From NCBI GenBank assembly GCA_002269645.1, contig NIVC01002676.1, forward strand, positions 86,228 to 150,227: a stretch of DNA of 64,000 nt. The letters are read 5' to 3'. Every line of letters starts with the position of its first letter. Position 1 is the stretch's first letter. The notes under the pieces are model-generated. The model saw nothing but the letters and a program-made list of their open reading frames with translations, made no database searches and had not been told where the DNA came from. This document shows positions 12,140-64,000 of this stretch, in pieces. Both the position numbers and the translations under genes were made by a program. This DNA comes from Macrostomum lignano. Its lineage: Eukaryota.

Positions 12140-13179
12140 GTTGGCGCAATAGTTTCTATGGACTAGTGGACACGCTTAAAGCTTGATTATTCTTCACACA
12201 ACCTTCCGAGAGTTGTCTTTTATGCGCCAGAATGTTTTGAAGTTTCTGAGCCACTGCTTTATCGGTATCAGGATTAGTCACTCTCGCTTTCTTGAATACT
12301 GAGCCCTCGCTGTGCCACCCTGGAGACGCGTTACGCCTGCACCAGCAGGGCCTCCTCGCGACTTGCCGATTGATAAGACTATCTGATTGATTGTGCTTTC
12401 ATGGCAAGGCCATTGGGTGCCCACTTGGCCTGCCTGTATCGGCTTGGATCACATGCAGATAAGCGAGATAGTGACCTCTGCCCCGGCCCTTTTTTGATTT
12501 TCTCTTTCTCAAAGGTGGTAAAGCTCACAAAAATTGAAAAAGAAAAACTTTCTTGAACGGGAAATTTTTCTATCGTCATAGTATAGAAGTATACTACAAT
12601 TAAAAAAGCCTATAAAATTCGAATATCGACGTTGAACTGGCTCCCCCGGGGCCGCATGTCTCCGGTGGAGAATACGGGCGGAAAGTTGCGCTGTTCATCA
12701 GGCGCGCGCAAGGCGACCCCCCGCGCTGGGTGGCTCTTCGTATAGAAAGAAGGCTTAGCCTATTTCTGTTCGTTTTGCCACAAAAAATTCTCTCATGGCA
12801 CGCATCTGGGTCGTCGCCCTGTTCAGACTTGAACTGAATTCTCGCCAGCCCCCACGCGCCACTCGCTTTCTCTGTGAAAGTTGCAGGCCGCGCCCGCGTT
12901 GCGCTGCGAATCGCAGTATCAACTTTGCTGTATTGCTGGATGCCTGCATGCGAAAACTCCTAAGAAAGTCTTAGTTTAGCGCTCCCATTGATTATATAGA
13001 CATCCTTCACTACGCCAATATGGTTCGCTTCAACCTAAAAGATGTGATCGTGTTGGCACAATGTCTATATCAATGCAAATTGAATCAATCAGTTTTAGGA
13101 AATTTCATGTACTTATGTACCCAGTGTAAACTGCTTGAAGCACTGTTTCTTAGGATATGACATAGACAAGTAACAGTCA

Positions 13180-13715
13180 CTTTCCAATGACAACTGCTTG
13201 CGCATCTGAAGGCTGTGTATGGCTGTTCAGTCCAAGGACTGGAAGGTCGCCACAAACACCCACAATTACCCCAGCTAAAGCTAGCACCCGCCTAAGGTGG
13301 CCTCGCCATTGATTTTATGGTGGGGGGACAAAGCCAAGAATTCTACATTTACATGTACATGACTTTCAGAATCGGTGCCGTCAGCTCTCATTTTGGCGCC
13401 GCAGTCACTCATTCTGGCGCCGCAGTCTCTCATTTTAGCGCCACAGGCACTCATTTTAGCGCCCTTGAAGCAAAATTATTGATTTCCATAACGGGTCACA
13501 AGGTTGCGTAGGGTGAACAAAGCATTGGCTTGTCCCCCCATAGCTTTTACTGGGGGGGGACATGTCCCCCGTGTCCCTCCGGTGGCGACGCCCCTGGAAG
13601 CAATGCAGAGCCAAGTGTCCTGCTCAAGGACACAAACTGTTCCGAGTTGAGTCGAGAATCGAACCCCCGACCTTTCAGTCGTGAGTCCGACGCCCTATCC
13701 ACGAGGCTGCAACCG
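13180..13715 (-). mobile_element. tRNA-derived SINE (CORE-like), interrupted by a MITE
   Basis: Minus-strand tRNA head (CGTGGATAGGGCG...GGTTCGATTC) followed by TGTGTCCTTGAGCAGGACACT, which resembles the CORE-SINE domain (from recall). Same family as the 45.3-45.9 kb copy. Left end approximate. Confidence 0.75.
13294..13596. mobile_element. GC-rich MITE of the CAGGGGCGTCGCC-TIR family inside the SINE
   Basis: Right end GGCGACGCCCCTG intact, left end degenerate; body is reverse-complement homologous to 45578-45831. Confidence 0.75.
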
Positions 13716-13820
13716 AATGCAGATGCTCTCAATACGCCCTAACCACGGGGCTGCAACCGAATGCAGATGCTCTCAATACGCCCTAACCACGGGGCTGCAA
13801 CCGAATGCAGATGCTCTCAA
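13691..13820. repeat. About 3 tandem copies of a 44-bp unit spanning the SINE 5' junction
   Basis: CGCCCT recurs at 13691, 13735 and 13779. Confidence 0.9.
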
Positions 13821-15084
13821 TAGGTAATCGTAAACCAAATAGCCAAGTATTGACTTAAAGGCTTGCAGGAGTTTTTCCCCAACTACAATCGTACTGCTTG
13901 GAGTCCGTCTTCGAACTGAGAAATCGACTCTGGCGTTTTGAATAATCCTGCTGTCAAGCTTGAACTTTGCATGACGTGGCCAAATAACTTGAAACTTTAA
14001 ACCAACTAATTTTTAATTAGCTCGCTCTCGTTCAACTTCATGGAAAGGCAAAAAAGCTCATTTAGCTTTGCGCAATTAGGATATTATAATTTTTAGTGAA
14101 ATTGCACTTGAAAACAAGCATTTGCTGCTCGCTAGGGCTTGCGCCAATTTCGCATGGGTGGAAAGCAATTCCAATCGAAACGAGAACAACCCGAAAGACG
14201 CAATTCCTCAATGCAATCATTCTGCAAAAAAGAGCGACCGAGCGAGGTATGCACCGGTGCATGGGCCTTTTTTTACCCGCCCGCCCCTTCGAATGTTGTC
14301 GGCCTGCATGAGCTGCAGTGGCTTGGGCTGTCTTGTAGCGATTTCGGTCGTCACCAAAAAATGAAGCCCCCACCAACAAGCTATAGCTTTAGCATCAAGA
14401 AGAAGCAGAGCTGGTGCGCCGCGTGGATTGGCCTGAACAGACGCGCAGACGGACGGAGAACGCAGAGAGAGAGCGTTCGTTCTCTCTGCGCAGTTGGAAT
14501 TTAGCTAGGCCAATTGGAAACTCCCAGCTTGATTCCAGCATTTCTCATGAGAGGAGAGAAATAAAGAAAAGTCGAATATAGATACACAGCGCCGGGTGCC
14601 CATATAATGGGCCAATCTCTCCTACTTATAACACCAGGTCTATGGAGCTTTTTTGCGCCCCCACTCTGTGCGCGCTCGATTTCAAACTTAGCAACCTCCC
14701 TTCCTTCATAGTTTGCATTCCCATGCTTTCCATTCCTGCCTGGAAGAAAAGCAAACCAGCTAAATAAGAGGCAATTAGAGCAGCAGAGGGGCTGAGCTGG
14801 TTGGCTGCTCCCGGCGCAGCTTGGCTACACCAGGCGCCTTTTTAAAAGGCCGCCCCTTCCTCAGTCTGCTCGGCCACTTGCTGGTAAACCCACTCGCCTT
14901 GACGACCGGCCTTGTAGCTTCCCTAGCTAGTGCCCTGTAGGATCCGTGCTTGCAACTTTACCGCACTGGAGACGGCTGCTATTTTTTTTATTAAAATACA
15001 GCAGCCGGGCTGCAGATTGTAAGCCATTCTACAGTGTACAGCGGGACGCTGAGCTCTTCGAACCTGACAACTGCCCGGCCCTGT

Positions 15085-15860
15085 GGGATCACTGTGAATC
15101 TGATCTTTGTGATCACTGTGACACAGCCCATGTGTGATCAATGTGAATCTGATCTTTGTGATCACTGTGACACAGCCCATGTGTAATCAATGTGAATCTG
15201 ATCTTTGTGATCACTGTGACACAGCCCATGTGTGATCAATGTGAATCTGCTCTTTGTGATCACTGTGACACCGCTCATGTGTGATCAATGTGAATCTGCT
15301 CTTTGTGATCACTGTGACACCGCTCATGTGTGATCAATGTGAATCTGCTCTTTGTGATTACGGTGACACAGCCATTTGTGATCAATGTGAATCCGATTTT
15401 TGTGATCATAGTGACAGCTCATGTGTGATCAATGTGAATCCGCTCTTTGGGATCACTGTGACAGCCCATGTGTAATCAATGTGAATCTGCTCTTTGTGAT
15501 CACTGACACCGCTCATGTGTGATCAATGTGAATCTGCTCTTTGTGATCACGGTGACACAGCCATTTGTGATCAATGTGAATCCGATTTTTGTGATCATAG
15601 TGACAGCTCATGTGTGATCAATGTGAATCCGCTCTTTGGGATCACTGTGACAGTCCATGTGTGATCAATGTGAATCTGATCTTTGTGATCACGGTGACAC
15701 AGCCCACGTGTGATCAATGTGAATCCGCTCTTTGTGATCACGGTGACACAACCAATGTGTGATCAATGTGAATCCAATCTTTGTGATCACAGAGACACAG
15801 CCCACGTGTGATCAATGAATCCGATCTTTGTGATCACTGTGACACAGCCTGTGTGATCCA
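15085..15860. repeat. Minisatellite, about 49-bp unit (GTGATCACTGTGACACAGCCCATGTGTGATCAATGTGAATCTGATCTTT)
   Basis: Seen directly, about 16 copies. Confidence 0.93.
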
Positions 15861-40706: not shown

Positions 40707-43375
40707 TCAATTGTGCTCAAAATCAATATTTGAAAAGGTAATATTATTCTCACGATAGTCGATTTCCTCTACGCTTGCTCGAGCAGAGCTCTCCTCGGAA
40801 AGTCCGCTGACGAGGGAGAGCTTGTGCGCGTACTGGTTGGTCTCCCACATTCCATTATGACCGTCATGTTGCTGTTGATATTCGCTGAATACCTCAGCGC
40901 GAGCCTCCGCCTGGGGATTGTAGCCACGTCTGAGCTCCTGCTGGGCTACCTGGTAGGTGCGCTCGGATTCTCTAGTTGCCATGCGGATGCCGATAGCTAG
41001 GCCAACGAGCAGCAACAGCGATACAACAGTGACTGCCAAGATTTGAGCGCTAGCGCCAGCTAATTGATTCTGAGAGGCCTGAGGCTGTTTTAAGCTCAGC
41101 GCCACCGTGAGGTCCCGCAGCTGGTCATCGGCATCGAAGTCGGTGGAGTAGAAGCACAGAGAGTCCTGTCGGCAGTCGTAGGCGAGCACCGATTCCCCAG
41201 GAACCGCTGGTGGCTTTCGCATCTCCAGGCTACCGAGACTCACGGATGGCGGATAGCGCAGGTTGAATACCGGGGTGACATTCTGACGGTCAGCGAGTTC
41301 CGGACCAAGGGACGGGTGGATCCAGATGGCCACTCGGCCTCGAGAATTGTCAGTTTCCAGGGTGCAGGCCGACCTGTCTTGCAGAAGAGGGGAGCGGGGA
41401 ACAATGGTCGCGAGCCCAGCTTGAGAAAGAGTTGCAGCTCAACGCCAACTCTGTTGAGATAACTGATTATTTCATCCGATAGACGGAACTCAAAAAATGT
41501 GCCGTTGTTTTGATTGCAGCCTTGCGCGGAGCAGATGTCAGTTATATTAATGATAAAATCTTGTATTTTTAGCCTTCTGATAAATACAACGTCACTGCCA
41601 GAACTTCTGATATAGTAATCTGAGGCGCCAATCCTTTGTGATTCGGAGGAGTTCACGGAAGCTTTGCACTCAAAATGGTGACTGAAGTTGGTGCCCAGTG
41701 ACGGATTAGCTGGGGGAACGCGAATCACGTCCATTGTCAAAGTTTTACTTGAAGTCGAAGTTGAGGTCGTAGTCACGCTCATCCAACTGTCTGCACTTGA
41801 AACCTTCTGGCGAAATGCCTTATCTGTTAGACGGTCCCACTTCACCTTGTCGTTACTAACTATAGGCATGTAGAACGTTGGCTCCAATGCGACCGACTTC
41901 AATCCAGAAAACGTCACTGTACAGCTGTAGGACGGAGATCCACCCTCCATCGCGAACACCTTCTCAGGCAATAGACCGGAACTATCAGATTTTGAACTCC
42001 CGCCGTGGCCAAAATTCTGAGCGAAGTGCGGCATCGAGACCACAGTGATGTCAAACTCGAAGCGCTTTGATCCAGCCTCACATCTGTATATCCCGGAATG
42101 AGCACCGGACACCGAAGATGTAAACTCGATGATATTGCCAGTCTTTGACACTCGAATTCCATCCAACAGATTCCATTCCTCCTTCTGCGACGGCATCAAG
42201 GGTTTTCCATCGCGATAAAACCGGTAGACCTCGCTCATGTCGCTACACAGAATGGGACAGACGATGGCATTGTTGTCCATGCCGGTCATCAGAGTCACTT
42301 TACTGGCAACGTTCGGCACTACTTCGCAGTTTCGAGACACCACAGTGCTGTTACAGCCCAGGTATGAAACTTCTCCTAGAGGAATTCTTAGTCTGACGGG
42401 ACCAGTGCTCACGTAGGGCTCTGAGTCCCCAGTGACGGATGCGATGGTACAGATTCCGATTGAATACTGAGGCTTGCAGTCTTGAAAGAAAAGCTGGACC
42501 TCTCTGCTTAGGCCGCATGTTGAAAACCAGAGCTTGCCGTCTCTCAAATTCAGGTATAGCAGCTTGGCGTGGTTTTTATGCATCGAATCCATTTTTGAGT
42601 GATAATTAACGATGAGAATGGACTTGCCCAGCTGGTAGGTGATGCAAGATGACGAATCGAAGTACAAAATCATGCCCAGATTGAGCTTCGCCCTGAGAAA
42701 CTCCGGCGCTTCAGCAACCAGTCCGACGATCTCGGAGCTAAGAAAGTCGACGCTGGAAAAGGTATCATTGTTGCTGAAAATGTTGGTGGCGAATCTGGTT
42801 GCATCCCGGGTGAGAAAGCTAGGAGTGTCCGAGTTCGCATCGACTAGCGCCCGCGAAGGGACAGCCGTGATGGGATCGAGGTTCCAGATGCGCAGCGGTC
42901 TGGACACGAGAAGGCCGGTGGAAAACTCTACTAGGACGAGCAGCTCCAGCGCTCCATTGAACACGTCCTGCCGAGCAAGGCCGGACTGCCCGATGTACAG
43001 ACTGTAGTCTACGTGGCTTCTGTCGCTCAGCGATATCCTGAATGGTAGAGAATCTGGGCAGCGAGTTGCCGCAGTGACGGCCGCTCCAACCGAGCCAAGG
43101 TCGACCGTGTCCGAGACAGCGGACTTCGGACACCGGAAAATCAGCAGGCGCCGCAGCCCGACGCCCGTGTCGCCGTGCACGCGCAGCCGTACGCCGATTT
43201 TGTTGCCGGCGCGAAGCACCGCCATAGCGTCGGAGTTGCCAACCTCCCAGACGTCGTCCCAGTTAAGTAGCAGCTTGGCAGATGAGGTGCACTCGAAATA
43301 TGGCGCTCGAGACCAGCTGTTAGCTGGGTAGGCAGCGAAGCAGAGCAATGCAATCAATAGCAGGCAGTTGTTCAT
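40707..43375 (-). CDS. Ig-domain single-pass receptor, copy A; intronless; one frameshift near 41390-41405 (pseudogene or assembly error)
   Basis: Signal peptide MNNCLLLIALLCFAAYPA; Ig motif IVC...YRFYRDG...HSGIYRCEAG; ORF 41333-40707 supplies the TM (ILAVTVVSLLLLVGLAIGI) and tail. ATG-to-stop is 2669 nt, one base short of a multiple of 3. Colinear with copy B. Confidence 0.8.
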
Positions 43376-45344
43376 TTTTGACACTGAAATTGCAAACAAC
43401 TGTTACTCATTAGTAATTTGAAATAGTCGTGATTGCAACTGTATCAGACAATTTTAGGGTTAACAGGCACCTGAAATTTCATTTCATTCAATTTCAGTGA
43501 TTGTCCTAAATATAGAACTGTACATGTTTTTAATCATAATTGATTTAGCCAAATTTATAAACTTAAACATCTGATATGAGCCTGAATACAAAAGTGTTCA
43601 TCGGGACTGTAAAAATACTAATTTGTTTATAAAAAAAGACACAAATATTTTCTTATTTCATTCATAAGTTTTTAAAAGTTTTTCGAATATGAAATGACAT
43701 ATTGTTGATATTTTTTTGTATTTCTAATCAAATTATTTTTCATTATTCTAAGTTTTTGCTATTAAACTTATAACAAGTGAGTACTCTTGTACTTTAAACA
43801 AAATTAAAATCCCTACACGAAGGAAAACACATGACTTTATTGTAGCTTTATTAACAAAAATGTTAAAAACTTTCTATTAAATCATCATAAAATCTCTGTA
43901 ATAGATGAAAATTAAAAAAATGTATATAACCGTCAATTTATTTCTATTTAATGATTAATAAAATCTCTAAATAATCTGTAAATAAGGATGTAAAAACAGC
44001 AGAAAGGTATAGAGGTTGTAACTGGACTCCTTTGAAAAATAATTTTTTAAAATTCTATTAGTTTCACGCATAATACAATTTTTAATAGTTCTATCCGATT
44101 CCCGAACTCTAATTCATTAACGACTCAAATTAGTCCGAGTTGTTTTGAATTAGTTCCATTTCTTATTGCGAGAAATCTTAACAAAACGTCGTGTTATTTA
44201 CATTAGTTAAATATTTATATGAAAAACGTAGTCTGATCTACTTTATAATATTTATATCAGTTTTAGTCATATCTGCCATTTATACTTGCATACAAACACG
44301 CCCAACCAATTAATTACGGATGATCTCTGTAGAATAACGTTTCAATGGTTTTTTTGATTGATTAGAAAGTAGGAGAGTAATCACGCGCGTTCTCTTCAGC
44401 TCCTTTAGTAACTGACCCGCGTTGTAGTCAGCGGTGAACAGAGAGGACGTATTTGTATCTATGGCTTATATCTATGGTTAGAGGGAATCTCAGCCATCCT
44501 GCTGTTTACGCTGATAATTTCAAGCAGCGTCGACTTAAGTTTCCTCCTGATCCAGAATTCAGATGCAAGAGAAGTCAGTAACCTGTATTTGTGCAGCTCA
44601 TATTTTGCAATGTGGGAGCTTCATTTATGCGAAAAAATTGTAGAACTAATTATTATTTCCGTGTTATTCCACCAACTTAAACGTAGTTATAAGCTATTAA
44701 ACAGGTTTTCTATAGCTTGTCCTCTCTCTGTTTCGCTTTGGATGTAGCATCATGATATCTCAGCTGTATTTTAAACGGGGCAGTAGCATATGCAGGAATT
44801 CTGCGCCCACTCAGCCCCCAGTTGAATACGTCACTGCATGACAGCCTTAAATATATTGAAAAAAAAATCTGAAGAAAATTCCTCTTAGAAGTTGCAGAAT
44901 TCTTTTAGAATGAAAGAATGAATGAAAACTAAGAAACATTTAACATGTTGATGTTGCATCACGAAAATGGAATTTTTTTCATCAATTTCCATAAATGCTC
45001 TATTCTGCATGGTTTCATATTCTGCTACAAGACTTCTTAGACGAGGAGGAGACTGCATTATTATTCATTCGCAGCTTATTCAGCTGTCAGAAGAATGAAC
45101 ACTGAACATTGTCAGTTAGCATATCAGTTAGCACATCGCTAGTAAATACAGATTTTTGTAAATTACTTCGATGGTAAACGGCGTCATATGTCGGTTAAAT
45201 GTCGGTGTGTAATATTTAACAGCATCCATTTTCTAGCGACGCAGATAAACGTAGGAAACGTAGTGAAAATTTCTAATTAACTTAGCTGTTTTGTTGAAAC
45301 TAAGGTATAAAATTAGTTTTACGGTAAATTAAATCAATAATAAT

Positions 45345-47045: not shown

Positions 47046-49676
47046 TCACGACAGCTCCAGGTCGTCCTTACTGTGAACGGACACAATGAAAGCGTTCAGC
47101 GTCTGCTTCGTGCCCACCACCGACTGCACCGGCGCGTCCTCATTGTCGGCGGCACCGGCCCTGACGTAGTCTTTGAAGGTTTCGTTCTTGGCCTCAGCTT
47201 TCGGATTGTGTCCAAGACGAATCTCCTTCTCCTCAACTAGGTAAGCCCTTTCAGGCGTCCTAGTCATGAGGTAAGCTGCCACCAGGCCAACAATCAAAGC
47301 CACACAGGCAGCGATGGCCACTCCGACAATCACACCCGAAGTACGAGTAGAAGCGACGACTCCAGGCTCGGGTAACGGTGTAACTAGAAAGGCCAGGTCA
47401 ACTCGAAGAAATTCAAGCCCATTAGATAAATCAAAGTCGGTGGAGTAAAAGCATAACTTGTCCGCCCGGCAGTCTCTTTGGCCGAGAGCGACGCTTGGAC
47501 CGCCGTAAGCACTTTTGTCGTGTCGAAGGTTTGTCAAAGCCGTTTTTGGCTGATAGCGGAAATTGTAAACGGCTGTAAGGTTTTTTCGTTTCTGCAGCTC
47601 ATTTAAAACGCTTTTCTGAGATATTGGCAAAACTTTGTAAGTCAGAGTAAAAGTTTTAGCGTCAAATCTGATGGCAGAAGCGTCTTTGACCAACAAGGAC
47701 TTCACATTTTCAAGAAGAAGATCGTCCAACATGAAGTAAGCAGAAACCTCGACCCCGACGTCCCGGAGGTAGGCTGCGGTGCTTTCCGAAAGAGCAAATT
47801 CGAACTTGGCGCCATTCGAGACGCTGCATTTCTGAACGCTACAATTGTTGTTTGGGTTTATGAGAAAACTGTCCTTCGTCAGGCGCTTTAGAAAAAAGAC
47901 ATCGGCACCCGTTTGAGTACGATACTCTGACATGCCCACCTGTGAAACAGACTCAAACTGATTAAGAGAAGCATTGCATTCAAATCGGTGACTGAAGTTG
48001 GTGCCCAGTGACGGATTAGCTGGGGGAACGCGAATCACGTCCATTGTCAAAGTTTTACTTGAAGTCGAAGTTGAGGTCGTAGTCACGCTCATCCAATTGT
48101 CTCCATTTGAAAACTTTTGACGAAATGCCTCATCTGTCAGACGGTCCCAGTTCACCTTGTCGTTACTGACCATTGGCATGTAGAACGTTGGCTCCACTGT
48201 GACCGACTTCAATCCGGAGAACATCACTGTACAGCTGTAGGACAGAGATTCGCCCTCCATCGCGAACACCTTCTCAGGCAACAGACCCGAACTTTCAGAG
48301 CTTGGAATTCCACTGGCTGCAGAAGAGTAGGTCACAGCAAAGTGCGGCATCGAGACCACAGTGACGTTGAACTCAAAGTGTTCCGATCCAGCATCACATT
48401 TGTATATCCCAGAATGAGCACTTGAGACGGAAGGTGTAAACTCGATGATGTTGCCAGTTCTCGACACCCGAATGCCATCTATGACTGTCCACTCCTCTAA
48501 TTGGGACGCATAAAGTGGGTTGCCGTCTCTGAAAAATCGATACATCTGGCTTTTATCGCTGCACAGAATGGGACAGACGAGGGCGGTGTTGTCCATGCCG
48601 GCCATTATGGTCAAAGTTTTCTTAGCATTTGGTGCCACTTTGCAGGCTGTAGACAATATGGGACATCCGGAGTAATGGACTTTGTCAATTGAATAGCGCT
48701 GATCTGCTGCCTGAATTTTTAGGTAGGGTTCAGATTCTCCGGAGAACGAAATGATGGTGCAGATTCCAACGGTATACTGCGGCTTCTTTTCATGATAAAA
48801 TGAGGTAATCTCCTGTTTTAAACCGCAAGCAGCAAAGTCTAAATAGCCACTCTCTACATCCAGGTGCATTATTTTTTGAAGCTTTTGATGTCGCAAGTCA
48901 AATTTGGAGTAGTAGCTTGTAAACAACGTGGCCTTTCCCAGTTGATTGTGCAAGCAGGACCCTGCATCAAAGTACAGGCTTGAGCCTAGTGTTATTTTGC
49001 TCCTGACGAACTGCGGTGCATTTTTGACAAAGCTTGAAATTGATGGTTCGATGAAGGGTACAGCTGGAAACTGGTCGTCAAGTGGGCTGGAATAGTTCAA
49101 CCTGGTCATCAGCTCAATCGCGGCAGGGGTAAGAAATTTTAAATCCAATGCCCCCATCTTTCCAACGCTAAATGCACCAAGTGGGTCAAAGTTGTACAGA
49201 AAGAGCGGATTGGACTGGATTGCCCCGCCAGACCATTCGACCCGCACAACGAGTTTCACTCTCCTGCTAGCCACCTGGGTATAGTGCACCTCTGAGGCTT
49301 TCATCTTCAGTTGAAAATGGTTCTCAGAGTTGCCCGCCTGTACAGTGAATGGAATGGTATTCGGGCATCGATGTTCGGGAGACAAGCTCGATTGGAGAGT
49401 GTCCATGTCAATCATTTGGGCCTGGGATTGCGGGCACTCGTAAATTAGAACTCTTTTTAGGCCGCTTCCGCCGCGATCGCCGCTCACGGACACCTGAATG
49501 TTGATGTGCTTGTCTTCGGTAAGAATCGACAGCATGTTGGACGATCCGACCTCCCAGGTGTCGCTCCAGGAAAGCAACACCTTGCTGGACGGTGAGAACT
49601 GGAACCGCGGCATCTGCTGGGTGGCGAGCGTGCAACCGGAGACCAGCGCCAGGAAGAATAGCGTCAAGAAGGCCAT
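47046..49676 (-). CDS. Ig-domain single-pass receptor, copy B; intact and intronless; 876 aa from the Met at 49676
   Basis: 2.6-kb ORF; signal peptide MAFLTLFFLALVSGCTLA; I-set-like Ig (LVC...RFFRDG...HSGIYKCDAG), second Ig-like region (GESLSYSC...RFEC); several N-x-S/T sequons; TM VIVGVAIAACVALIVGLVAAYLM; tail of about 65 aa. Confidence 0.9.
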   Translation of the reverse strand: MAFLTLFFLALVSGCTLATQQMPRFQFSPSSKVLLSWSDTWEVGSSNMLSILTEDKHINIQVSVSGDRGGSGLKRVLIYECPQSQAQMIDMDTLQSSLSPEHRCPNTIPFTVQAGNSENHFQLKMKASEVHYTQVASRRVKLVVRVEWSGGAIQSNPLFLYNFDPLGAFSVGKMGALDLKFLTPAAIELMTRLNYSSPLDDQFPAVPFIEPSISSFVKNAPQFVRSKITLGSSLYFDAGSCLHNQLGKATLFTSYYSKFDLRHQKLQKIMHLDVESGYLDFAACGLKQEITSFYHEKKPQYTVGICTIISFSGESEPYLKIQAADQRYSIDKVHYSGCPILSTACKVAPNAKKTLTIMAGMDNTALVCPILCSDKSQMYRFFRDGNPLYASQLEEWTVIDGIRVSRTGNIIEFTPSVSSAHSGIYKCDAGSEHFEFNVTVVSMPHFAVTYSSAASGIPSSESSGLLPEKVFAMEGESLSYSCTVMFSGLKSVTVEPTFYMPMVSNDKVNWDRLTDEAFRQKFSNGDNWMSVTTTSTSTSSKTLTMDVIRVPPANPSLGTNFSHRFECNASLNQFESVSQVGMSEYRTQTGADVFFLKRLTKDSFLINPNNNCSVQKCSVSNGAKFEFALSESTAAYLRDVGVEVSAYFMLDDLLLENVKSLLVKDASAIRFDAKTFTLTYKVLPISQKSVLNELQKRKNLTAVYNFRYQPKTALTNLRHDKSAYGGPSVALGQRDCRADKLCFYSTDFDLSNGLEFLRVDLAFLVTPLPEPGVVASTRTSGVIVGVAIAACVALIVGLVAAYLMTRTPERAYLVEEKEIRLGHNPKAEAKNETFKDYVRAGAADNEDAPVQSVVGTKQTLNAFIVSVHSKDDLELS

Positions 49677-51124
49677 GATCTGGACATTGGACGGACATGA
49701 GTGAAATATGCATTGAAATATTGGCACCCTATAATTCGATTATTGCAAGCTTAACAGAAAGCCAATTTTACTAAGATTTGCTAATTCGAGTTTTTACTGA
49801 ACTCAATTTTAGTTTGGCGATTAAATAACTCTATGCTTTATGCTCGCATTCATATCAATCACATCATACGCACTAGATTCATCTAATCTCTAACATGCAA
49901 ACTAAAGATACATAAGGTACGATTTTCGCGTGCAAAGGAAATTAATATTTGAACAATAAATAAAAGTTTTTACTTACAAAAATATGGTAAACTCGAGGTA
50001 GTTCCAGAAGCAACTGTAACAAGCAGAAGATTGATTTATGTTGCCACCGTTGCTGCAACTACGCAAATAAGGTCTAGCTATACAGTAGGGTAGTGTATTT
50101 GAGGCGAATAATTTGAATTCGTGCTGATGCATATTTTATATTAAAGATTAACCGTTTTTTGAATTAAGTAAGAAAAATAATGTAGAAAAAATTACTAAAT
50201 AAAAGTTCACTTATTTTGTGTAAAGTTCGGTTTTATTTTTATAAAATTTGTTATACTCCTACTAGCAAGAAGTTTCTAGAAACGAATAAAAAAATTTTAC
50301 GTTTTGACAGATGCATGCGAGTCAGGGTATAGTTATAGGAATCGTGCACCCAGTTCATTCATCTGAGATCCTTTATTTCCCCCAAATTTATTCTAATTTA
50401 GCTATTTGACGAAGTCATGATAAAAATCGAAGTCCAGAGTAAAGCATTATAGAAGTCTGGCTCGAACATGTACAATACTAAAGCAGAAGAATCTTTCATT
50501 TTCAATAAAAATAATTTATTACAGATCGGATATAACTATGGATAAATTATTTCTACAACTTAATCGAAGAGATCCTTGTGGATGTACCAATGTAGGCAAA
50601 ATGAAGTATGTAACATGCTTTTAAAAATCTGCATGTAAGATACTCCATGGAATCGTTGATTCTCTTTGCTCTTACAGCTTTCAGACCTGGGCTCTAACGA
50701 ACTCGCTCGAGCAACAGGTGATGAATGAATAACTGTCACCCGTAGCGCAGCACTCCAATACAAAAACCGGCTTGCAATCAATATCTATGTTTGTCGCTAG
50801 CAAATGAGTATTTTCGATTTGCATCGATAGCATTCGGCTGACCTATAACGTCATAATCCACCTGTGTAATGTACAGGCATCAGCAGACCGTCAGCATACC
50901 TTCTTTAGGTATGATAGTTTGTCTGATAAAAAATTTGCATTTGAGTATTTCTCAATGTGTGTAGCATCTAACTAGAAATTGGTGCGAATTTTCGATTAAA
51001 AACCAGTAGGTTCGATACAAACGAGTACAAAGTCAGCAACTTAATTATCAGGACTACACAAAGTGTGATGTGTCAAATTTTGCTGTTAATTAAACCTATA
51101 GTAAAGCCGGAGTGGATAAAACGG

Positions 51125-51362
51125 GAGAGATGAGATAAAAGAAGAGGAGAGAAGAGGAGAGAACAGGAGAGGAGAGGAGAAGAGAGGGGAGGAGAGGGGA
51201 GGAGAGGGGAGGAGAGGAGAGGAGAGGGGAGGAGAGGGGAGGAGAGGAGAGGAGAGGAGAGGGGAGGAGAGGGGAGGAGAGGAGAGGAGAGGGGAGGAGA
51301 GGGAGGAGAGGAGAGGAGAGGAGAGGAGAGGAGAGGAGAGGAGAGGAGAGGAGAGAAGAGGG
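51125..51362. repeat. (GGAGA)n polypurine tract
   Basis: Seen directly. Confidence 0.93.
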
Positions 51363-52019
51363 AGGAGCGGAGACTGCGCTATTTTTAGTGCATGGTTTCG
51401 AAAATCCTTACAATTGGTTTTTGCTTTAGTTTTGAACAATGAGCGATTTTTCTAGGCTGAAAAGCAATTGTAAAAAATATACAAATACGCAAACAAAGAC
51501 TCTAAACGCAGAATCAATGTAACTTAAGGCAGAGATCTGATTGGAATCTGGTTTGAAGGTGCGAAATTCCGTTCAAAAGCTCCGATTTTTTTACTTCGGA
51601 TGTAGCTAGAAATTCTGGCTACTCGTAGAAATCGCAGGGTCAAATTTTAAAATTTACTTCGACACTTCGACCTACACGTAGACAATTTTTGCAAGATAAA
51701 GAATCGGATCAGCTGATTTTTCGATTATTAAATACAAAATGTGCATAGTTAGTGCTTCCAAATATTGTAAAACTCAACGCAGTCATACGAGCTATACGAT
51801 AAGTAAGTTGAATGGTAACTCAAATCGTAAGTTAGAACTTTGCGCCCTGTGTAAGATCAGTCTTACTAAATTCCATTTAGATCTTGCGAAACTCTCGTAC
51901 TTATCCCGTACGTACATAAATGTTGAATAGAAAGAACTGGACGAAAGTGGAAAAACTTGATGCCTTTATAAACAATGTAGCTTATTAACAGAGATGAGGT
52001 TGCTTCTCCTTTCTCCTGA

Positions 52020-52514
52020 CCACCCCTAAGGCCTGACCACTTAGCAATTCACAGCTTGGAAATTCCACATGAGACTTATGATTGAACCCCAACCCTATCC
52101 CTGCCGAGTCACAGTATTTCGGCTATTCCCCCCATGAGCCACAGTATTATAACAATTAACCAATGAACATTGACATTTATTGAATTTTATCTCGGCAGAA
52201 ATTTCAGCAATTCTCTTATGAGCCTTGGACATCTCAGCTATTCACAGTGAGCCTTAGCATTTCAGCGATTCCCATGTGAGCTTTTTCATATTGAGCTTTT
52301 TACATATTATTGACATCTCCCCAAGAGTCCCAGAATTCCATAATTCCCCCTCTCCGAGCTTTGTCATCTCAGCAATTCCCAAATGAGCCTTGATCCCTTA
52401 GCAATCCACCAACGAGTCTTTTATTTTCGAAAAGGAAACCCTTTTATGGTTTAACCATAACCCTAACCTAATCCTAAACTAACCCTGCCTAAAGTCCACC
52501 ATTCCACCATGAGC

Positions 52515-52515
<1 letters not shown>
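52020..52515. repeat. Degenerate satellite-like repeat (ATGAGCCTTGACATCTCAGCAATTCCC-like)
   Basis: Recurring GAGCCTT/CAGCAATTCCC motifs; the same family resumes at 57660-58270. Confidence 0.65.
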
Positions 52516-55640
<3,125 letters not shown>

Positions 55641-56349
55641 CTTTCTGACAAATTTGATTCGGACTGATTTATGAACTGCCAATTTCTGCATGATTTTTCA
55701 CTGTTAAAATAGCTTTTAATCTCGTTTTTATTTTACTGTAAAAGTTCACGTGGGTACGATGTTATACACGGCCACCCTCAGTCACTGCGCGGGCTATTTT
55801 AGTCCAATTGCACATTGAGCTGATGTACACGCTAGGTTGGTGTTCGTGTAATTGGATTTACGTTTCACTCGTATCGAACTGTTAGGTTGGGTCTCAATAT
55901 ATTGTCATGAATGTGTTATTGTAACTTGAGTTGAGTGCACTATTCTACGCCGGGCCAGTCTGGCCGGCCTCTCCCCCCTCCTCAGATATTTTCTGACTCA
56001 CCCCCTTCACTTCTGCACGTGCGTAGCCCCCCCTCTCTGCCTAGGCCTTGTCTGTTATTCAACCCCCATTCTCTGCGTGCGACCCCCCCATTCTTTGCGT
56101 GCGACCCCACCCCATTATTTTGTTAGCCTAGCTGCCCCGCCCCTATAGATCGTGATTGGCTGCCAGTCCCAGTCTGCCGTGCTGCGCCCCCGGCGATTGG
56201 CTGGTACGGCTCATGTGTGTCCCATGCTGTTGTCTAAGCCCCCTTTTCTGCCTTTATCCCGCGCCCTCAACCCCTAGTTTGCTGCCTATTTTTTCGGACC
56301 CCGTGAGACTCCGTGGCTCCCCGGTGATTTTGCCAGCGTTGGTTGCTAT

Positions 56350-57288
56350 TGTAGTGATCCGCTAGTTAGTGTTAGGCGTCGCACTTCGTCAGCAGTCGCC
56401 CTTGCCCTCGCCCTCGCCCTGGGTTGCTGTCTGCCGCTGGTCAGCTTCCCGCCTCCCTCCTTTTGTCTGTCTGTTGCTGCTCCCTTCCCTCGTTTTTTCC
56501 CGTTTTGCCCCTTGTTTCTCAGCCCTCAGCTTCTCTGCTGTGGACTGTCTCTGTTTCGCTCGGTCTTTCTTTCCCCTGTCATGTGAGCGAGTCACATAAC
56601 AGATCCTCGATCTGTTCTTTGAGTCCTAAAGTGCAGTAAACATGTTTACTGCACTTGTTGGCCCTGTTTACCGGAAGAGTCACATGCTTTCGGCCCCCTC
56701 CCTTCTCTAAAGAGAGGAGTGACTCATGTTGCTAAAAATAGCAACTGAGTCACAGCCATGTGCACTCTGCCGGGAGACCCTCAAGTGACGTCAGTTCTAA
56801 AAATAGAACGAGGTCACGAGGTCTTGTGCGTGGGTGTTTCCCGGTTATAAATAGGACCCCTCTCCCTTGTTTCCGTCAAGGAATGGCTTCTTATCTGCGG
56901 AGAATTCACTAAGATCCCGTGCGCGTCAGTGTCTAACTAAGTGCCCTTTGCGTACTGAATCCGTTTGTACTGGTCTGACTGAAACCCCACTAAAGCCCAA
57001 GCCTAAGGGAGGCTAACACTGCCTTCCCAGCCACCCCTGAGCCCGGCGGGGAGCTGCTGATCAGGACGCCTTGTTCATTAATCTGCAAATCTGCACGCTG
57101 TGCTGAGTTCGTTGACTTGTTTATTTCGTTCCGACGGGAAGCTCACCTCATCGAAGGCCGAGACCTGAAGGAACTGGTGGCAGCACTACCTACGCTACTG
57201 AGAGTTGAGAGAACTTCCCACTGAAGAGGCACGAGTCATAAGGTAATCCGCAAGGGCCTAATCCGGGAAGCAAACAGCCTGTACTTCA
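56350..57288 (+). mobile_element. Solo LTR (939 bp), same family as 5359-6325
   Basis: TGTAGTGA...TTCA ends; 4-bp TSD CTAT (56346-56349, 57289-57292); TATA box near 56847. Confidence 0.88.
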
Positions 57289-57659
57289 CTATTAAGTGTC
57301 CGAATTGTCCGACAAATACAATTAAAGAATATCGATACTCCCACTGCTCTGTCGGCGCTGTTCCCGAGTTGTACGACCGAAATCGCGGCTGGTGAGCCTT
57401 CCCATTTGCAAGTCATTTGGGTCTGCATCTGTACTAGGCACCTTAGAGGGATTAAGTGCGTCGTACGCCGGTCCCAACCCAAGCAGCTCTGCGTCGTACG
57501 CGTGTCAGTGGAGGACCGCAGCCAGGGTCAGTGCGCGAACCCGGGTCTGGGAAAGGGGCACGAAAGGACCGAGCCCTTGAGCCCCATCACAGCAATATGT
57601 ATCGCAATCCAATGCCCAAGTCGGGGCCGAAGTCTTATTCAGCAAATTATCTCTGTTTC

Positions 57660-58270
57660 GCGTCAGTCACTACAGTCCCCTCATGAGCCTTGGCAACTGA
57701 GTCATTCCCTCTATGAGCTTTGAAAATCTGAGCAAGTGTCTTATTAGTCTTTTTTGGTAGACAGGCTAATTCTTTTACGGTTGAACCTTTACACTTACGC
57801 TAACATTCCTAAACGGAACCCTCACCATAACCCACCCTATCCAAAACCCCGCTGAAGGTTACAAGATTTCAGCCATTCTGCCCCATGAGCCACAACAATC
57901 CCCCCAATGAATATTCTCATCTCAGCAATTCCCCGTGAGCCTCAATATCTCAGCAACCACATCTACTGGAGACCCTTGATATCTCAGAAATTCCCCTTAA
58001 CAGCCACAGCATTTCAGAAATCATCCCATGAGCCTTGACAGCAAAGGAATTTCCCAATGAACCTTGACAATCTAACAACCCCACCCGTGAGACTTGTTAT
58101 CGCAGCGATTTTCCAAATAAACCTTGAACTCGCAGCAATTCTTCCTAAGAATCACAGTATTTGAGCTATCCCCTCCATCCTCGACATCTCAGAAATTTCT
58201 GCCGTAAGCCTTGACTCTTAGCAATTCCTCCATCGGTCTTGACATCTTAGCAATTCCCAATGAGTCTTGT
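57660..58270. repeat. Degenerate satellite-like repeat, same family as 52020-52515
   Basis: Recurring GAGCCTTGA...CAGCAATTCCC motifs. Confidence 0.65.
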
Positions 58271-61200
58271 ATGTTCGACAGGGTGCTTCTTTTTGTTTGA
58301 CACGGTGATTCTTTTTTTCGTTCTTTCTTTCGCTCAGTTTTCTTCTTTTTAAAAATAGCTTTTAGTAAAAAATTGCAATGGTTCACCAGCAGTTTAGCTA
58401 TGTGTGGCGCCGCGCCTTGCTCAGCTCATTAACTTTCACTGACTTACTTTGTGTACGCAATATTTACTCATTGCCAATGTTACGTAGCGTGCACGCGGCA
58501 CGTTGTACCTAGGCTACAGTTAGAAATGTTTGACTGCGCTATATTATAGGCGGCACGTGCCGTCTTGGTTTCTTACGTGGTTTCTTAATAATATAAAGGC
58601 CAGTTTGGCTATCACCTCAAGTCGCGTTTTTTTTGTGCTCAACTAAGCGCTCTCTTATAATGGACGACCTTATTGCTACGGCACGACACAATGGTTCACC
58701 AGCACTGTTTCACACAATCCCTGAGCAGATGGCCACAAATCTCAATGCTTTACATTAAACACGCCGGAAGGAGCCAAACGAGACAAATCAGTTGCGAAAA
58801 GCAGGCAGCGGCCGAGAAAGCGGATCCCAGTGGATCAAGCGAAGCGTTTATTTATTAGATTAAACGAGTTAATATTCATTGGTTCGTAAAAAAGAGAATA
58901 AAAAAAATTGAGAAATGGCGGACGGAGACAAGCCGGGCCGGGTGCAGAGGCTTTAAGCTGGCCCGCGCGGCCAACACCCCACACCTCAACCCCCGCCAAA
59001 GTACAGCGATATGTACAGCGGCACCCCCGGCGCGTCTAACACACCTTACTCAGAGAGTAACGATTGCATTAGATCGAAATCATTTGAAATCTTTGCAACT
59101 CGCAATTTAAATTTGATTTGCAATCCTCTTATACATATTTATTACTTTTCTCATAAGTCAGATTAGCACCGCTCCCCCAAATTAGCGCTGCTCAACCAGA
59201 TTAGCACCACCAGATGTACATAATGTTGTACATCCTTCAATAATTTCAATTTTACTTTTAAAATGCACTTGCTGATTTATCTCACTAGAGTGCACGCGCA
59301 ATGCTTGGCACACTGCAGCCTTCACCTAAAAAAGAATATTTAAAAAGCTCGTAATGCAATCGTTATCGGAATACGAATTCAGTCAGTCAACAATTCAACC
59401 TTGTTTGGCCTCCTATTGAAAGCATTGGAAAACTCAGTTTTCAAATATTTAATACATGTAGCATTGAAACAGATTAAAGAAATTTAAACTGTCTTCCTTC
59501 CAGATAATTACAGATCTTTTGGCGAAAACGCGATCAAAATTGGTCAATCGGTTCAATGTCTAGAGCCTTAAAGACAAACAAACAGATCTTGGGCATTTAG
59601 TATATGTGGTAGTATAGTATATATGTAGTAATTATTAATCAAATATTTGCTATCTGACTGTGTTACAAACACCTGCAGCCAACACCTAGCTCGTAATGGC
59701 TCAAATGAGATTTCCTTTTTACATTTTTGACGGCAAAATAGTTAGCAGAATTAGTTGGCTACTTGCTTCAGGATCAACAGAAAGAAGCACCTTAGTTATA
59801 TGGTTGTTATACTCGTAAACATTGTGTTTACTGGTTATTTCTTCCTATCATTAAATACTTTTATACCTTCACAGTATTCAGTAATTATGGCGAAGAAAAG
59901 TTCACAGCAAGACCCTGGTGATATCTTAAAAATAAATCTTCTCCAAGCAGCTACCCGAAGCAGCTGGCCTTCTACTTGGCTGGTCATGAATTTTCAGTTG
60001 AAGTGATTCTTATCGAATCTCTAATTTTCATGAATTCTGGAAAAAGCTTTTCCAACTGAATTAGGAAGTTTATCTTTAAAAGAAAACATAAATAGAGAGA
60101 AGGTCACAGATGACCGTTCATAATCACAGAACTTACACAGTTGGCTAATTTTAAGCTGAAAACTGCGTCAATCAAAAAATTGATAGGCGCATAGACTATT
60201 TTTCTGATGAAGGAATTCGAGTAACCGTAACGATCATCGTAGAGTTTTAAGCAGAAGCAAATTTTAGCACGTCAGCTTAGTCTCAGATAGCTTGCGTATA
60301 TGCCATTGACAGCAGACTGTTTGAGCAACAGGCTGAGGTCTGAACCTTTACTCGTATTCTTGCTAGCCAAGTCGTTCTCAGAGACAAACAATGAGTGTCA
60401 AATTGTCTTGTGACAAAATTTTGCCGAAAGATCTTGCCGATCTGCCAGATGATTACAATAATTTCATAGAGAGGTATGCAAGAAGTTAATCATGATGCAA
60501 GCAAGCTCATGCTTAAAGGTTTCTGGTTCATGCTCCCTAATGACTGCCCAGTTTCTAAATGCTCTTCCTGTCTATCTATCACGTTCCCATTTTACACTTT
60601 GACATTTTAAATTTTACACCATTTGATATTGGTGCAAGCCATCGACAGTAAAGATGCAAGAGTGCGCTTTATTTCAATGTAGTGAGTTAGTTTTGTCTTT
60701 CTTAGCATACTTGATATGAGCCGATTTCTTTCCAGTTTTCTTTAACTATTAAACATGATGCTCTATCAGTTTCCTCGGCATTACTTTGAGCGTTTTCACC
60801 GAAAAAGTAGTGTGCACGCGCATGCGTTTCGGAGTCATACATGTAGACATAGACTGATTGAGCATTCTGTCTGTGTGGTCACATCTAGCCATAGATTGAC
60901 TTTCTTCCTTGAAACTCCATATGTAGGTTGAGTAGGTTGGGGAAGGTTGGAAAGGACATAACTAATAGTTATAGTGTGTACTCGTAATTGAACTTTTACA
61001 TGTTAATCATAGAACATAATACTTGCATTAAACATTTATTATTTCAGAGTTGCGTGCATAGCTAGAGTTTAATAACATTTAGGTCATCGGCTGAATTAGT
61101 GATATAAATATAGTAATAGTTACTGGTTAATTCTTTTTGTCTTTAGTAAAATACGAGCTGGCGGACAAGCAACGCTATTTTGTATCGCAATCATGTACAA

Positions 61201-61693
61201 CTGAAGTCCTTCTACATCAGTTGTCCACGGTTGCAAATATTCGTAGGACTTCCACATGAGTCGCGTGATGGCAATAATGATGAATTTTACAGAGAGTAGC
61301 CTTCGAAAAATGAAAGCAAAAACTTACTTAATAATTCGATTGTATGATATACTCGCAGATTTAAAAAGTACCGAACACAGAAGCGTCTGTAAGTATCTTT
61401 CAGAGTATAAAAGACACAACAAGCAGCACCTGTACTGTGGAACTTACGAGTACGCTTGTAATTGTGCTCGTTATTACAGTTTGTCTTCTAATTCGGGGTC
61501 TAGTTAACTTTTTATGAAAAAGTAGGAAATTTTTGGAGTACCTATTCTAAAACACCAGCTCCAATTACTAAGATATTTTAACATATTTGCACGGTCTCAG
61601 AAACACTCCTGGCATAAAGACTTAAATAGAAAAACAGTATTAAACGATGCATGCATTATTTTCTGTGCTGTCTGTCGATGTGTCATATCTCAA

Positions 61694-64000
61694 TCACGAC
61701 AGCTCTAGGTAAATGGACGCAATGGAAGCGTTCAGCATCTGCTTTGTGCCCATCTTCTCTTTCTCCTCAACTTGGTAAGCCCTTTCAGGCGTCCTGGTCA
61801 TGAGGTAAGCTGCCACCAGGCCAACAATCAAAGCCACACTGGCAGCGATGGCCACTCTGACAATCACACCGAAGTACGAGTAGAAGCGACTCCAGGCTCG
61901 GGTAATGGTGTATCTAGAAAGGCCAGGTCAACTCGAAGAAATTCAAGCCCATTAGATAAATCAAAGTCGGTGGAGTAAAAGCATAACTTGTCCGCCCGGC
62001 AGTCTCTTTGGCCGAGAGCGACGCTTGGACTGCCGTAAGCACTTTTGTTGTGTCGAAGGTTTGTCAAAGCCGTTTTTGGCTGATAGCGGAAATTGTAAAC
62101 GGCTGTAAGGTTTTTTCGTTTCTGCAGCTCATTCAAAACGCCTTCCTGAGATATTGGCAAAACTTTGTAAGTCAGAGTAAAAGTTTTAGCGTCAAATCTG
62201 ATGGCAGAAGCGTCTTTCACAAACAAGGACTTCACATTTTCAAGAAGAAGATCGTCCAACATGAAGTAAGCAGAAACCTCGACCCCGACGTCCCGGAGGT
62301 AGGCTGCGGTGCTTTCCGAAAGAGCAAATTCGAACTTGGCGCCATTCGAGACGCTGCATTTCTGAACGCTACAATTGTTGTTTGGGTTTATGAGAAAACT
62401 GTCCTTCGTCAGGCGATTTAGAAAAAAGACATCGGCACCCGTTTGATTACGATACTCTGACATGCCCACCTGTGAAACAGACTCAAACTGATTAAGAGAA
62501 GCATTGCATTCAAATCGATGACTGAAGTTGGTGCCCAGTGACGGATTAGCTGGGGGAACGCGAATCACGTCCATTGTCAAAGTTTTACTTGAAGTCGAAG
62601 TTGAGGTCGTAGTCACGCTCATCCAACTGTCTCCATTTGAAAACTTTTGACGAAATGCCTCATCTGTCAGACGGTCCCAGTTCACCTTGCCGTTACTGAC
62701 CATTGGCATGTAGAACGTTGGCTCCACTGTGACCGACTTCAATCCAGAGAACATCACTGTACAGCTGTAGAACAGAGATTCGCCCTCCATCGCGAACACC
62801 TTCTCAGGCAACAGACCCGAACTTTCAGAGCTTGGAATTCCACTGGCTGCAGAAGAGTAGGTCACAGCAAAGTGCGGCATCGAGACCACAGTGACGTTGA
62901 ACTCAAAAAAGTGTTCCGATCCAGCATCACATTTGTATATCCCGGAATGAGCACTTGAGACGGAAGGTGTAAACTCGATGATGTTGCCAGTTCTCGACAC
63001 CCGAATGCCATCTATGACTGTCCACTCCTCTAATTGGGACGCATAAAGTGGGTTGCCGTCTCTGAAAAATTGATACGTCTGGCTTTTATCGCTGCACAGA
63101 ATGGGACAGACGAGGGCGGTGTTGTCCATGCCGGCCATTATGGTCAAAGTTTTCTTAGCATTTGGTGCCACTTTGCAGGCTGTAGACCATATGGGACATC
63201 CGGAGTAATGGACTTTGTCAATTGAATAGCGCTGATCTGCTGCCTGAATTTTTAAGTAGGGTTCAGATTCTCCTGAGAACGAAATGATGGTGCAGATTCC
63301 AATGGTATACTGCGGCTTCTTTTCATAATAAAATGAGGTAATCTCCTGTTTTAAACCGCAAGCAGCAAAGTCTAAATAGCCGCTCTCTACATCCAGGTGC
63401 ATTATTTTTTGAAGCTTTTGATGTCGCAAGTCAAATTTGGAGTAGTAGCTTGTAAACAGCGTGGCCTTTCCCAGTTGATTGTGCAAGCAGGAGCCTGCAT
63501 CAAAGTACAGGCTTGAGCCTAGTGTTATTTTGCTCCTGACGAACTGCGGTGCATTTTTGACAAAGCTTGAAATTGATGGTTCGATGAAGGGTACAGCTGG
63601 AAACTGGTCGTCAAGTGGGCTGGAATAGTTCAACCTGGTCATCAGCTCAATCGCGGCAGGGGTAAGAAATTTTAAATCCAATGCTCCCATCTTTCCAACG
63701 CTAAATGCGCCAAGTGGGTCAAAGTTGTACAGAAAGAGCGGATTGGACTGGATTGCCCCGCCAGACCATTCGACCCGCACAACGAGTTTCACTCTCCTGC
63801 TAGCCACCTGGGTATAGTGCACCTCTGAGGCTTTCATCTTCAGTTGAAAATGGTTTTCGGAGTTGCCCGCCTGTACAGTGAATGAATGGTATTCGGGCAT
63901 CGATGTTCGGAGACAAGCTCGATTGGAGAGTGTCCATGTCAATCATTTGGGCCTGGGATTGCGGGCACTCGTAAATTAGAACTCTTTTTAGGCCACTTTC
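61694..64000 (-). CDS. Ig-domain receptor, copy C; 5' end beyond the window; near-identical to B in the ectodomain; three 1-nt deletions as assembled
   Basis: About 97-98% amino-acid identity to B over about 675 aa (by eye). Single-base losses near 63884, 63910 and 61870, all in short G/C runs. The TM and a shortened tail are still present in the shifted frame and end at the homologous stop (61694-61696). Confidence 0.8.

Follow-up and report, generated by a model that had tools for sequence, protein, structure and literature searches.

Genes at the Locus

The stretch of DNA analysed here (64,000 nucleotides, called the window below) comes from the flatworm Macrostomum lignano and contains a small cluster of related genes for predicted membrane proteins, in which one gene, copy C, combines an ectodomain almost identical to that of its neighbour, copy B, with a shortened cytoplasmic tail. 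The window was placed via the protein of copy B (P0002) and corresponds to positions 86228–150227 of contig NIVC01002676.1 (assembly GCA_002269645.1, Mlig_3_7). It includes three related minus-strand open reading frames (ORFs), namely A at 41240–43399, B at 47046–49727, and C at 61864–63942, the last of which continues in a downstream frame. C and B lie on the same strand, 12 kb apart, with C upstream of B, and the gene order is C, B, A. Copy B (47046–49676, minus strand) is intact, with 876 amino acids (aa) from the ATG, and its protein is identical to the NCBI protein P0002. Its long tail is of the L1 type, truncated and lacking the FIGxY motif. Copy A (40707–43399, minus strand) is a diverged family member with a transmembrane segment and an L1-like proximal tail. 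Copy C (61694–64000, minus strand) is a partial coding sequence (CDS) with three 1-nt homopolymer deletions. Its codons 1–86 are missing because the contig physically ends at window position 64000 (contig position 150227), which means that the gene was cut by the assembly and not by the window alone.

Counterparts of these genes occur on other contigs. The sister contig, NIVC01004882.1 (loci L005 and L004), carries another family member (P0036), a second C (C2), and a second B (B2), in this order. On a third contig (locus L003), the order is P0010, B3, and A3, and C is absent. A further locus, L001, was also included in the comparison. The Mlig_3_7 assembly was built from PacBio data with Canu and polished with Pilon, and 180 Mb of the M. 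lignano genome lies in duplicated blocks with an identity of 95% or more (PMC5730564). The species has also been described as having three subgenomes (PMC10733133).

Copy C Compared with Copy B

In the ectodomain, C and B are approximately 97% identical in protein over about 780 residues and 98% identical in DNA. The initial annotation, made from the window alone, had described the two as a long-tail/short-tail gene pair with near-identical ectodomains, and this pair is genuine. Its reading of C in the downstream frame was reproduced by minus-strand translation of window 61690–61915, which gives RYTITRAWSRFYSYFGVIVRVAIAASVALIVGLVAAYLMTRTPERAYQVEEKEKMGTKQMLNASIASIYLELS followed by a stop (also read as ...YFGVIVRVAIAASVALIVGLVAAYLMTRTPERAYQVEEKEKMGTKQMLNASIASIYLELS and a stop). 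Here, the membrane segment and the tail read ...GVIVRVAIAAS...ERAYQVEEKEKMGTKQMLNASIASIYLELS, and the stop codon, at 61694–61696, is homologous to that of B. The transmembrane segment of C, GVIVRVAIAASVALIVGLVAAYLM, is encoded at 61799–61870 on the minus strand (helix 781–805 in the structural model of B), and the cytoplasmic tail of 34 residues, TRTPERAYQVEEKEKMGTKQMLNASIASIYLELS, is encoded at 61697–61798 on the same strand.

Three changes distinguish this part of C, and all of them, already proposed from the letters of the window, were recovered when C was aligned to B with MAFFT. An arginine (Arg) codon, AGA, at 61856–61858 (minus strand) replaces the GGA found in B, B2, and B3 (alignment column 2355, pattern GRGG), making this a C-lineage-specific change from glycine. 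An in-frame deletion of 102 nt, with its junction at 61755/61756 (minus strand), corresponds to window 47120–47221 (minus strand) in B and removes IRLGHNPKAEAKNETFKDYVRAGAADNEDAPVQSV, including the conserved cytoplasmic block G-H-N-P-x-A-E-A-K-x-E-x-F-K-x-Y. An in-frame deletion of 12 nt, with its junction at 61710/61711 (minus strand), creates a tyrosine (Tyr) codon and the C-terminal string SIYLEL. Both deletions keep the frame up to the homologous stop, for which the probability by chance is about 1/9; taken alone, this is weak evidence. The C-specific junction sequences are GAGAAAGAGA joined to AGATGGGCAC, and CCATTT joined to ACCTAGAG.

The complete set of insertions and deletions in C relative to B consists of −1 at 63910, −1 at 63884, +3 at 62908–62910, −3 at 61891/61890, −1 at 61870, −102 at 61756/61755, and −12 at 61711/61710. 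The 1-nt deletion at the CC/CCC site (61869–61870), which had been recognised before, is present in the alignment. Two more frameshifts (63910 and 63884), the 3-nt insertion, the 3-nt deletion, and the end of the contig at 64000 had been overlooked.

Intactness of Copy C

All three frameshifts of C in the window are 1-nt deletions in homopolymers. At 61869–61870 (minus strand), GGG on the coding strand has become GG, and the extra base is present in C2, B, B2, and B3 (column 4282). The other two, within 63884–63911 (minus strand), are CCC to CC at 63911/63910 and CC to C at 63885/63884 (columns 2237 and 2264); they lie approximately 100–120 nt from the contig end, and the missing base is again present in C2, B, B2, and B3. 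The sister contig NIVC01004882.1 matches window 64000–58566 at 99.8% identity and carries C2 as an uninterrupted ORF (L005 12589–15156), with 838 aa from the ATG (12640–15156). The membrane segment GVIVRVAIAAS and the 34-residue tail of C2 are identical to those of C in the window. A third intact version is the protein P0005, which has 838 aa and the same tail and lies two residues from each genomic C; the frame-corrected C of the window differs from it at 2 of 769 residues. P0005 matched no record in an exact look-up against the contigs. The label "MetaClust" co-occurs with UniParc/UniRef entries of M. lignano beginning with A0A1I8, and P0005 probably derives, by inferred provenance, from an earlier ML2-based annotation.

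The C gene is thus an intact ORF of 838 aa, comprising a signal peptide, the ectodomain, a transmembrane segment, and a tail of 34 residues. Judging from the sequences compared, errors of the PacBio assembly are the most likely source of the three frameshifts in the window, since all three are single-base homopolymer deletions that are absent from the sister contig. Near-identical duplicated blocks, together with three subgenomes, provide the conditions under which short-read polishing fails. A similar 1-nt deletion (CCCCC to CCCC at about 41400) interrupts A in the window, and an intact 910-aa ORF of A is found in L001 (16916–19648). In L004 (at about 13290), the tail of B2 contains a 1-nt deletion that is absent from the otherwise identical L001 copy (P0001, in frame). 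As a result, the annotated 946-aa protein P0003 (PAA46398.1) has an aberrant C-terminus, and this deletion is probably another assembly indel that was carried into the public annotation.

For a pseudogene, disabling mutations would be expected to be fixed in all copies. Here, the frameshifts are confined to NIVC01002676.1, and both L005 and P0005 have an uninterrupted ORF. The earlier caveat that C might be a pseudogene is therefore largely lifted, as the frameshift at 61870 and the two further ones are absent from a second contig that has the same Arg and the same deletions in an intact 838-aa ORF. Absence of the Arg and the deletions from other haplotypes had been named as a point that would refute the pair, and at least one further haplotype or homeologue carries them. 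A second such point was a real and fixed 61870 frameshift in an untranscribed C; its first part no longer holds, since the sister contig has the extra base, and the second part is taken up below with the annotation status of C.

Protein Family and Cytoplasmic Tails

Domain searches give little information about these proteins. Pfam reports a single weak, sub-threshold immunoglobulin (Ig) domain in B and C and no FnIII domains, and a PDB sequence search with B returned nothing useful. A word-indexed protein search with B recovered its own 90% cluster only, and the family became visible in an exhaustive HMMER search of 1.84 billion representatives, which gave 13 proteins at E ≤ 0.001. The nine distant matches P0006–P0014, like P0001, are all from M. 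lignano; the source names of P0016 and P0017 were not looked up, and P0015 is an unnamed ENA record. Five of the matched clusters are 39–47% identical to B over nearly the full length. As far as these sequences indicate, the family is restricted to Macrostomum among the named matches. P0015, a fragment of 185 aa, has a very similar membrane-proximal tail (AYLMTRDRGETY...FKEY) and possibly belongs to another flatworm. Searches of the literature and supplements for Mlig003394 and Mlig026651 found nothing.

The cytoplasmic tails are more informative. P0006–P0008 match the L1CAM-type tail domain Bravo_FIGEY (PF13882) with 37–61 bits, at a gathering cutoff of 23.8, and the motif GSFIG[GE]Y or GSFIGDY is present in P0006–P0008 and P0025. 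The tail of B alone scores 18.1 bits (E 0.006), which is below the same cutoff, and a scan of C for this domain gave no match. By this measure, the family would be assigned to Bravo_FIGEY, and C itself would fall outside it. The FIGxY motif was not found in the tails of A, B, and C. In an alignment of ten family tails, it is limited to the three full-tail clusters P0006–P0008, which indicates that the tails of A and B are already truncated. The family forms a series of tail loss, from full FIGxY tails through B and A, which lack FIGxY, to C.

The same alignment shows what the tail of C has retained and what it has lost. The membrane-proximal sequence R-x-x-E-R-x-Y-x-V-E-E-K-E is common to all ten tails, including that of C. 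The block G-x-x-P-x-x-E-x-x-x-E-x-F-x-x-Y is nearly invariant in nine of the ten and missing solely in C, and its absence coincides exactly with the 102-nt deletion. Hence, the stretch GHNP...ETFKDY, whose loss had been pointed out before, is indeed a conserved motif.

A structural view of the ectodomain was obtained from an AlphaFold model of B, based on a family alignment of 24 sequences (predicted local distance difference test, pLDDT, 79; predicted template modelling score, pTM, 0.73). The best Foldseek matches of this model are contactin-2 Ig1-6, the contactin-1/neurofascin-155 complex, axonin-1, Dscam, and titin, with E values of 1e-15 to 1e-10. Identity to the PDB matches is about 9%, and the template modelling scores are low (0.15–0.29), as expected for flexible chains of domains. 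On the basis of the model and the tails, the best description of the family is that of Macrostomum-specific, highly divergent Ig-type cell adhesion molecules (IgCAMs) of L1/contactin-like character, predicted to be type I membrane proteins with a chain of Ig-like domains and an L1CAM-type tail. The family has already been labelled by automatic annotation through its Bravo_FIGEY tail, and C itself is uncharacterised.

Membrane Segment and Tyrosine Motifs

The Arg of C is residue 5 of a hydrophobic stretch of 24 residues, and 19 hydrophobic residues follow it. The best 19-residue transmembrane window, VAIAASVALIVGLVAAYLM, starts right after the Arg and has a summed apparent free energy of −1.27, compared with +0.09 for the 23-residue window that includes the Arg. 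According to these values, the 19 residues could span the membrane alone. The charge that had been placed in the outer part of the transmembrane segment is therefore located at its outer edge, as proposed, but it need not be buried, since the 19-residue window spans by itself. An Arg at the outer membrane boundary is, on this evidence, most likely tolerated or neutral, with its side chain snorkelling to the surface, and it is probably not an adaptor-docking charge. Among the family transmembrane segments inspected, a charged residue is unique to C, as is the loss of the conserved block. In the Mlig022515 cluster, P0033 and P0009 differ by glycine versus Arg just outside the transmembrane segment (INQAGISF versus INQARISF).

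Signalling motifs of immune receptors were sought in the tails by a regular-expression scan. The tails of B and A contain no immunoreceptor tyrosine-based inhibitory, switch, or activation motif (ITIM, ITSM, and ITAM, respectively) and no YxxL/I, with [ILVS]xYxx[ILV] as the ITIM/ITSM pattern. The analogy with inhibitory and activating receptors of the KIR/LILR type is thus not supported on the side of B, whose tail is instead a truncated L1CAM-type (Bravo_FIGEY) tail. A single ITIM-like string, SIYLEL (window 61697–61714), occurs, and it lies in the short tail, that of C, where the 12-nt deletion created it; this is opposite to the proposed long-tail/short-tail polarity. The string is probably due to chance, for which a rough estimate is about 0.06 per Tyr, with two Tyr in the tail. 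SIYLEL as a real ITIM was set aside, being within chance by this estimate.

Gene Conversion and History of the Pair

The similarity between the copies changes abruptly along the gene. L005 and L003 are collinear at approximately 97% identity from the upstream gene through the 5′ flank of C/B3 and the CDS up to the exact point of the 102-nt deletion, and past this point identity falls to 65–75%. The 5′ flank of C2 is 95–100% identical to that of B3 and unlike the flanks of B and B2. In windowed alignment, the CDS of all C and B copies is 97–99% identical. From the tail on, C diverges: its coding tail is 86–91% identical, the first 35 nt or so of the 3′ untranslated region (UTR) about 94%, the sequence after that about 72%, and the remainder is unalignable. 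This private 3′ flank of C occupies 61300–61693 (minus strand; bounds approximate). The 3′ flanks of B, B2, and B3 are 95–98% identical to each other.

Substitutions follow the same division. The C lineage has 7 substitutions in 2136 nt of ectodomain and 11 in about 165 nt of transmembrane segment and tail, which makes them approximately 20 times denser in the latter, with both synonymous and non-synonymous changes raised. At six of the seven substitutions that separate the two C copies, each C agrees with the B copy of its own contig, which is direct evidence of conversion between C and the neighbouring B in cis. At the level of sequence, these comparisons show the ectodomain of C to be homogenised with cis B by gene conversion, with a private transmembrane segment, tail, and 3′ end. 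C is an old duplicate, far older than the subgenome split, because its 3′ flank is at least 28% diverged, compared with 3–5% between subgenome copies. Since conversion explains the near-identical ectodomains and is common to any tandem duplicates, this near-identity alone is no sign of a paired function.

Recombination is also visible in B3 (P0004, Mlig026651g1), which has a C-type 5′ side (L003 1256–12446 versus L005 3612–15094) and a B-type 3′ side (L003 9837–14463 versus window 49830–45234). Such hybrid flanks are the signature of unequal crossing-over between C and B. They suggest either that a crossing-over removed about 14 kb in the B3 subgenome copy or that the reverse duplication occurred.

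Between B and C, the ratio of non-synonymous to synonymous substitution rates (dN/dS) in the ectodomain is 0.30. Polarised on the C branch, the ectodomain has four non-synonymous and three synonymous changes, which are too few and confounded by conversion. The comparison of coding with UTR divergence as a test of constraint on the tail was rejected, since the adjacent 35 nt of UTR are equally conserved and look like the edge of a conversion tract.

A patch of approximately 640 nt in the region of an Ig-like domain is 83–84% identical between A (41658–42289) and B/C (B 47968–48605, C 62498–63138). Outside this patch, BLASTN detects no DNA similarity between A and B/C. Old gene conversion or strong constraint on this segment may account for it.

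Surroundings of the Genes

The interval between B and C (window 49728–61693) recurs in L001 and L004 with 99.5% identity and is lacking in the L003 arrangement. It has a GC content of 0.50–0.57 at 52–58 kb and contains several ORFs of 100–220 aa on both strands, including those at 53.3–55.7 kb and 57.4–57.7 kb. The ORFs between B and C (53–57 kb) and elsewhere in the window gave no Pfam match. Window 5788–33285 is packed with long tandem-repeat arrays, with periods of 4, 14, 19–30, 40–60, and others, and up to about 250 copies, which fits the reported repeat richness of the M. lignano genome. A strong negative GC skew is found at 26–34 kb. At every locus seen, the NCBI gene calls omit copy A.

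Interpretation of Copy C

The reading favoured here, with a probability of about 0.55, is that C is a real tandem paralogue of the L1/contactin-like IgCAM family that has become uncoupled through its tail. Such a protein would reach the membrane and bind whatever B binds, and it would be unable to engage the putative cytoplasmic partner of the GxNPxxEAKxExFKxY block. By analogy with short-tail forms of IgCAMs, C could serve as a variant of B that is uncoupled, decoy-like, or modulatory. Several results weigh against this reading. The NCBI annotation of M. lignano is transcript-guided (PMC5730564), and C is annotated there on neither contig, even where its ORF is intact. In the transmembrane segment and tail, dN/dS is 0.70, based on a total of 12 changes, which is indistinguishable from neutrality, and conservation is no higher in the coding tail than in the 35 nt of 3′ UTR that follow it. 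Conversion alone could hold the ectodomain ORF open without selection on C, and P0005 may be an ab initio model because it has no name or accession. These observations suit the main rival account, a decaying or non-functional duplicate, in which the tail motif was deleted, the Arg and the tail changes are neutral, and recurrent B-type conversion keeps the ectodomain looking intact. The dense changes in the membrane segment and tail, the directly visible conversion with the cis B copy, and the progressive loss of tails across the family agree with this account as well. It is nevertheless the less probable of the two, as two independent sequences contain the complete ORF of 838 aa without interruption, and both tail deletions are in frame with the homologous stop kept. 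Furthermore, the near-identity of the 5′ flank to that of the annotated B3 gene means that the promoter region is probably intact, and the divergence of the 3′ flank implies that C is long-lived and that its approximately 60 private codons have remained free of disabling mutations over this time.

The initial annotation had seen in the pair a convergence on immune-type paired receptors, with C as an activating, short-tail form that recruits an acidic-transmembrane adaptor through its Arg and B as a long-tail signalling or inhibitory form. Linked genes, ectodomains 97% identical, distinct tails, and conversion limited to the ectodomain would fit this proposal, as would an Arg unique to C among the family transmembrane segments inspected. 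In receptors coupled to FcR-gamma, such as GPVI and Fc-alpha-RI, the Arg is near the outer end of the transmembrane segment, and its position in C is similar. The proposal is, however, improbable: the tail of B has no ITIM, ITSM, or ITAM and is homologous to L1CAM-type adhesion tails, the Ig-chain model of the ectodomain matches neural IgCAMs, the Arg can sit at the interface, with 19 hydrophobic residues after it, and the lone ITIM-like string is in C, not in B. The pattern of similarity is, moreover, fully explained by gene conversion. To our knowledge, homologues of DAP12, FcR-gamma, and CD3-zeta are not known outside vertebrates, and we know of no acidic-transmembrane adaptor in flatworms. 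A selected two-gene IgCAM pair, in which conversion matches the ectodomains, the tails are held apart, and the membrane-edge Arg couples C to a different putative membrane partner, seems just as unlikely; if true, it would mean that an invertebrate adhesion molecule has converged on the logic of paired receptors. Least probable by far is an artefact of assembly, such as a chimera at the contig end or the collapse of a haplotype of B. It could be invoked for a gene at the very end of a contig with homopolymer errors, but the same C with its private 3′ flank is internal in a second contig (99.8% identical), which extends a further 12.8 kb upstream, the independent gene model P0005 has the same tail, and the flanks of C are unlike those of B. 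A chimera of the assembly was rejected on the strength of the sister contig.

Comparison with Known Systems and Significance

The closest parallels are found in the L1CAM family, which includes L1, neurofascin, NrCAM, Drosophila neuroglian, and C. elegans LAD-1. P0006–P0008 carry PF13882 with the ankyrin-type motif GSFIG[GE]Y, copies A, B, and C keep the membrane-proximal R-x-x-E-R-x-Y-x-V-E-E-K-E, and the ectodomain model of B is an Ig-like chain with its best matches among contactin and neurofascin structures. In neuroglian, a conserved distal cytoplasmic region of 36 aa binds ankyrin (PMC2133023). The M. lignano proteins differ from this family in their identity of about 9% to solved IgCAMs and in having a single weak Pfam Ig domain and no FnIII domains. 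In addition, FIGxY is missing from B and C, and C has neither the central conserved block nor any Bravo_FIGEY match.

Forms of IgCAMs that share an ectodomain and differ in their anchor are well known, such as NCAM-120/140/180, neuroglian 167/180, neurofascin 155/186, and the glycosylphosphatidylinositol-anchored contactins, and tail-less forms modulate or partner with tailed ones. The C/B pair resembles them in that one adhesive ectodomain occurs with or without the sequences that couple it to the cytoskeleton or to signalling. These forms arise by alternative splicing or from ancient separate genes, whereas C is a tandem gene with an ectodomain homogenised by conversion. Vertebrate paired receptors (KIR2DL/2DS, LILRB/LILRA, PIR-B/PIR-A, and SIRP-alpha/beta) are also similar in being linked paralogues whose ectodomains are matched by conversion or recombination, one with a long tail and the other with a short tail and a basic residue in or at the transmembrane segment. 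In contrast to them, the long tail of B is of the adhesion type without an ITIM, and the Arg of C is at the edge of the transmembrane segment. Nothing seen here indicates an immune role, and, at present, the C/B locus says nothing about how immune paired receptors arose.

Tandem paralogues that have a truncated tail and an ectodomain under concerted evolution are a known kind of phenomenon. For users of Mlig_3_7, the locus illustrates how intact genes may be mistaken for pseudogenes because of homopolymer errors at the ends of contigs. Concerted evolution in a neopolyploid genome is clearly exemplified as well, with traces of both cis conversion and unequal crossing-over. Should C be expressed, it would represent a natural experiment in a flatworm accessible to transgenesis, with the same ectodomain present with and without the conserved cytoplasmic block, and the contrast between C and B could help to show what this block does.

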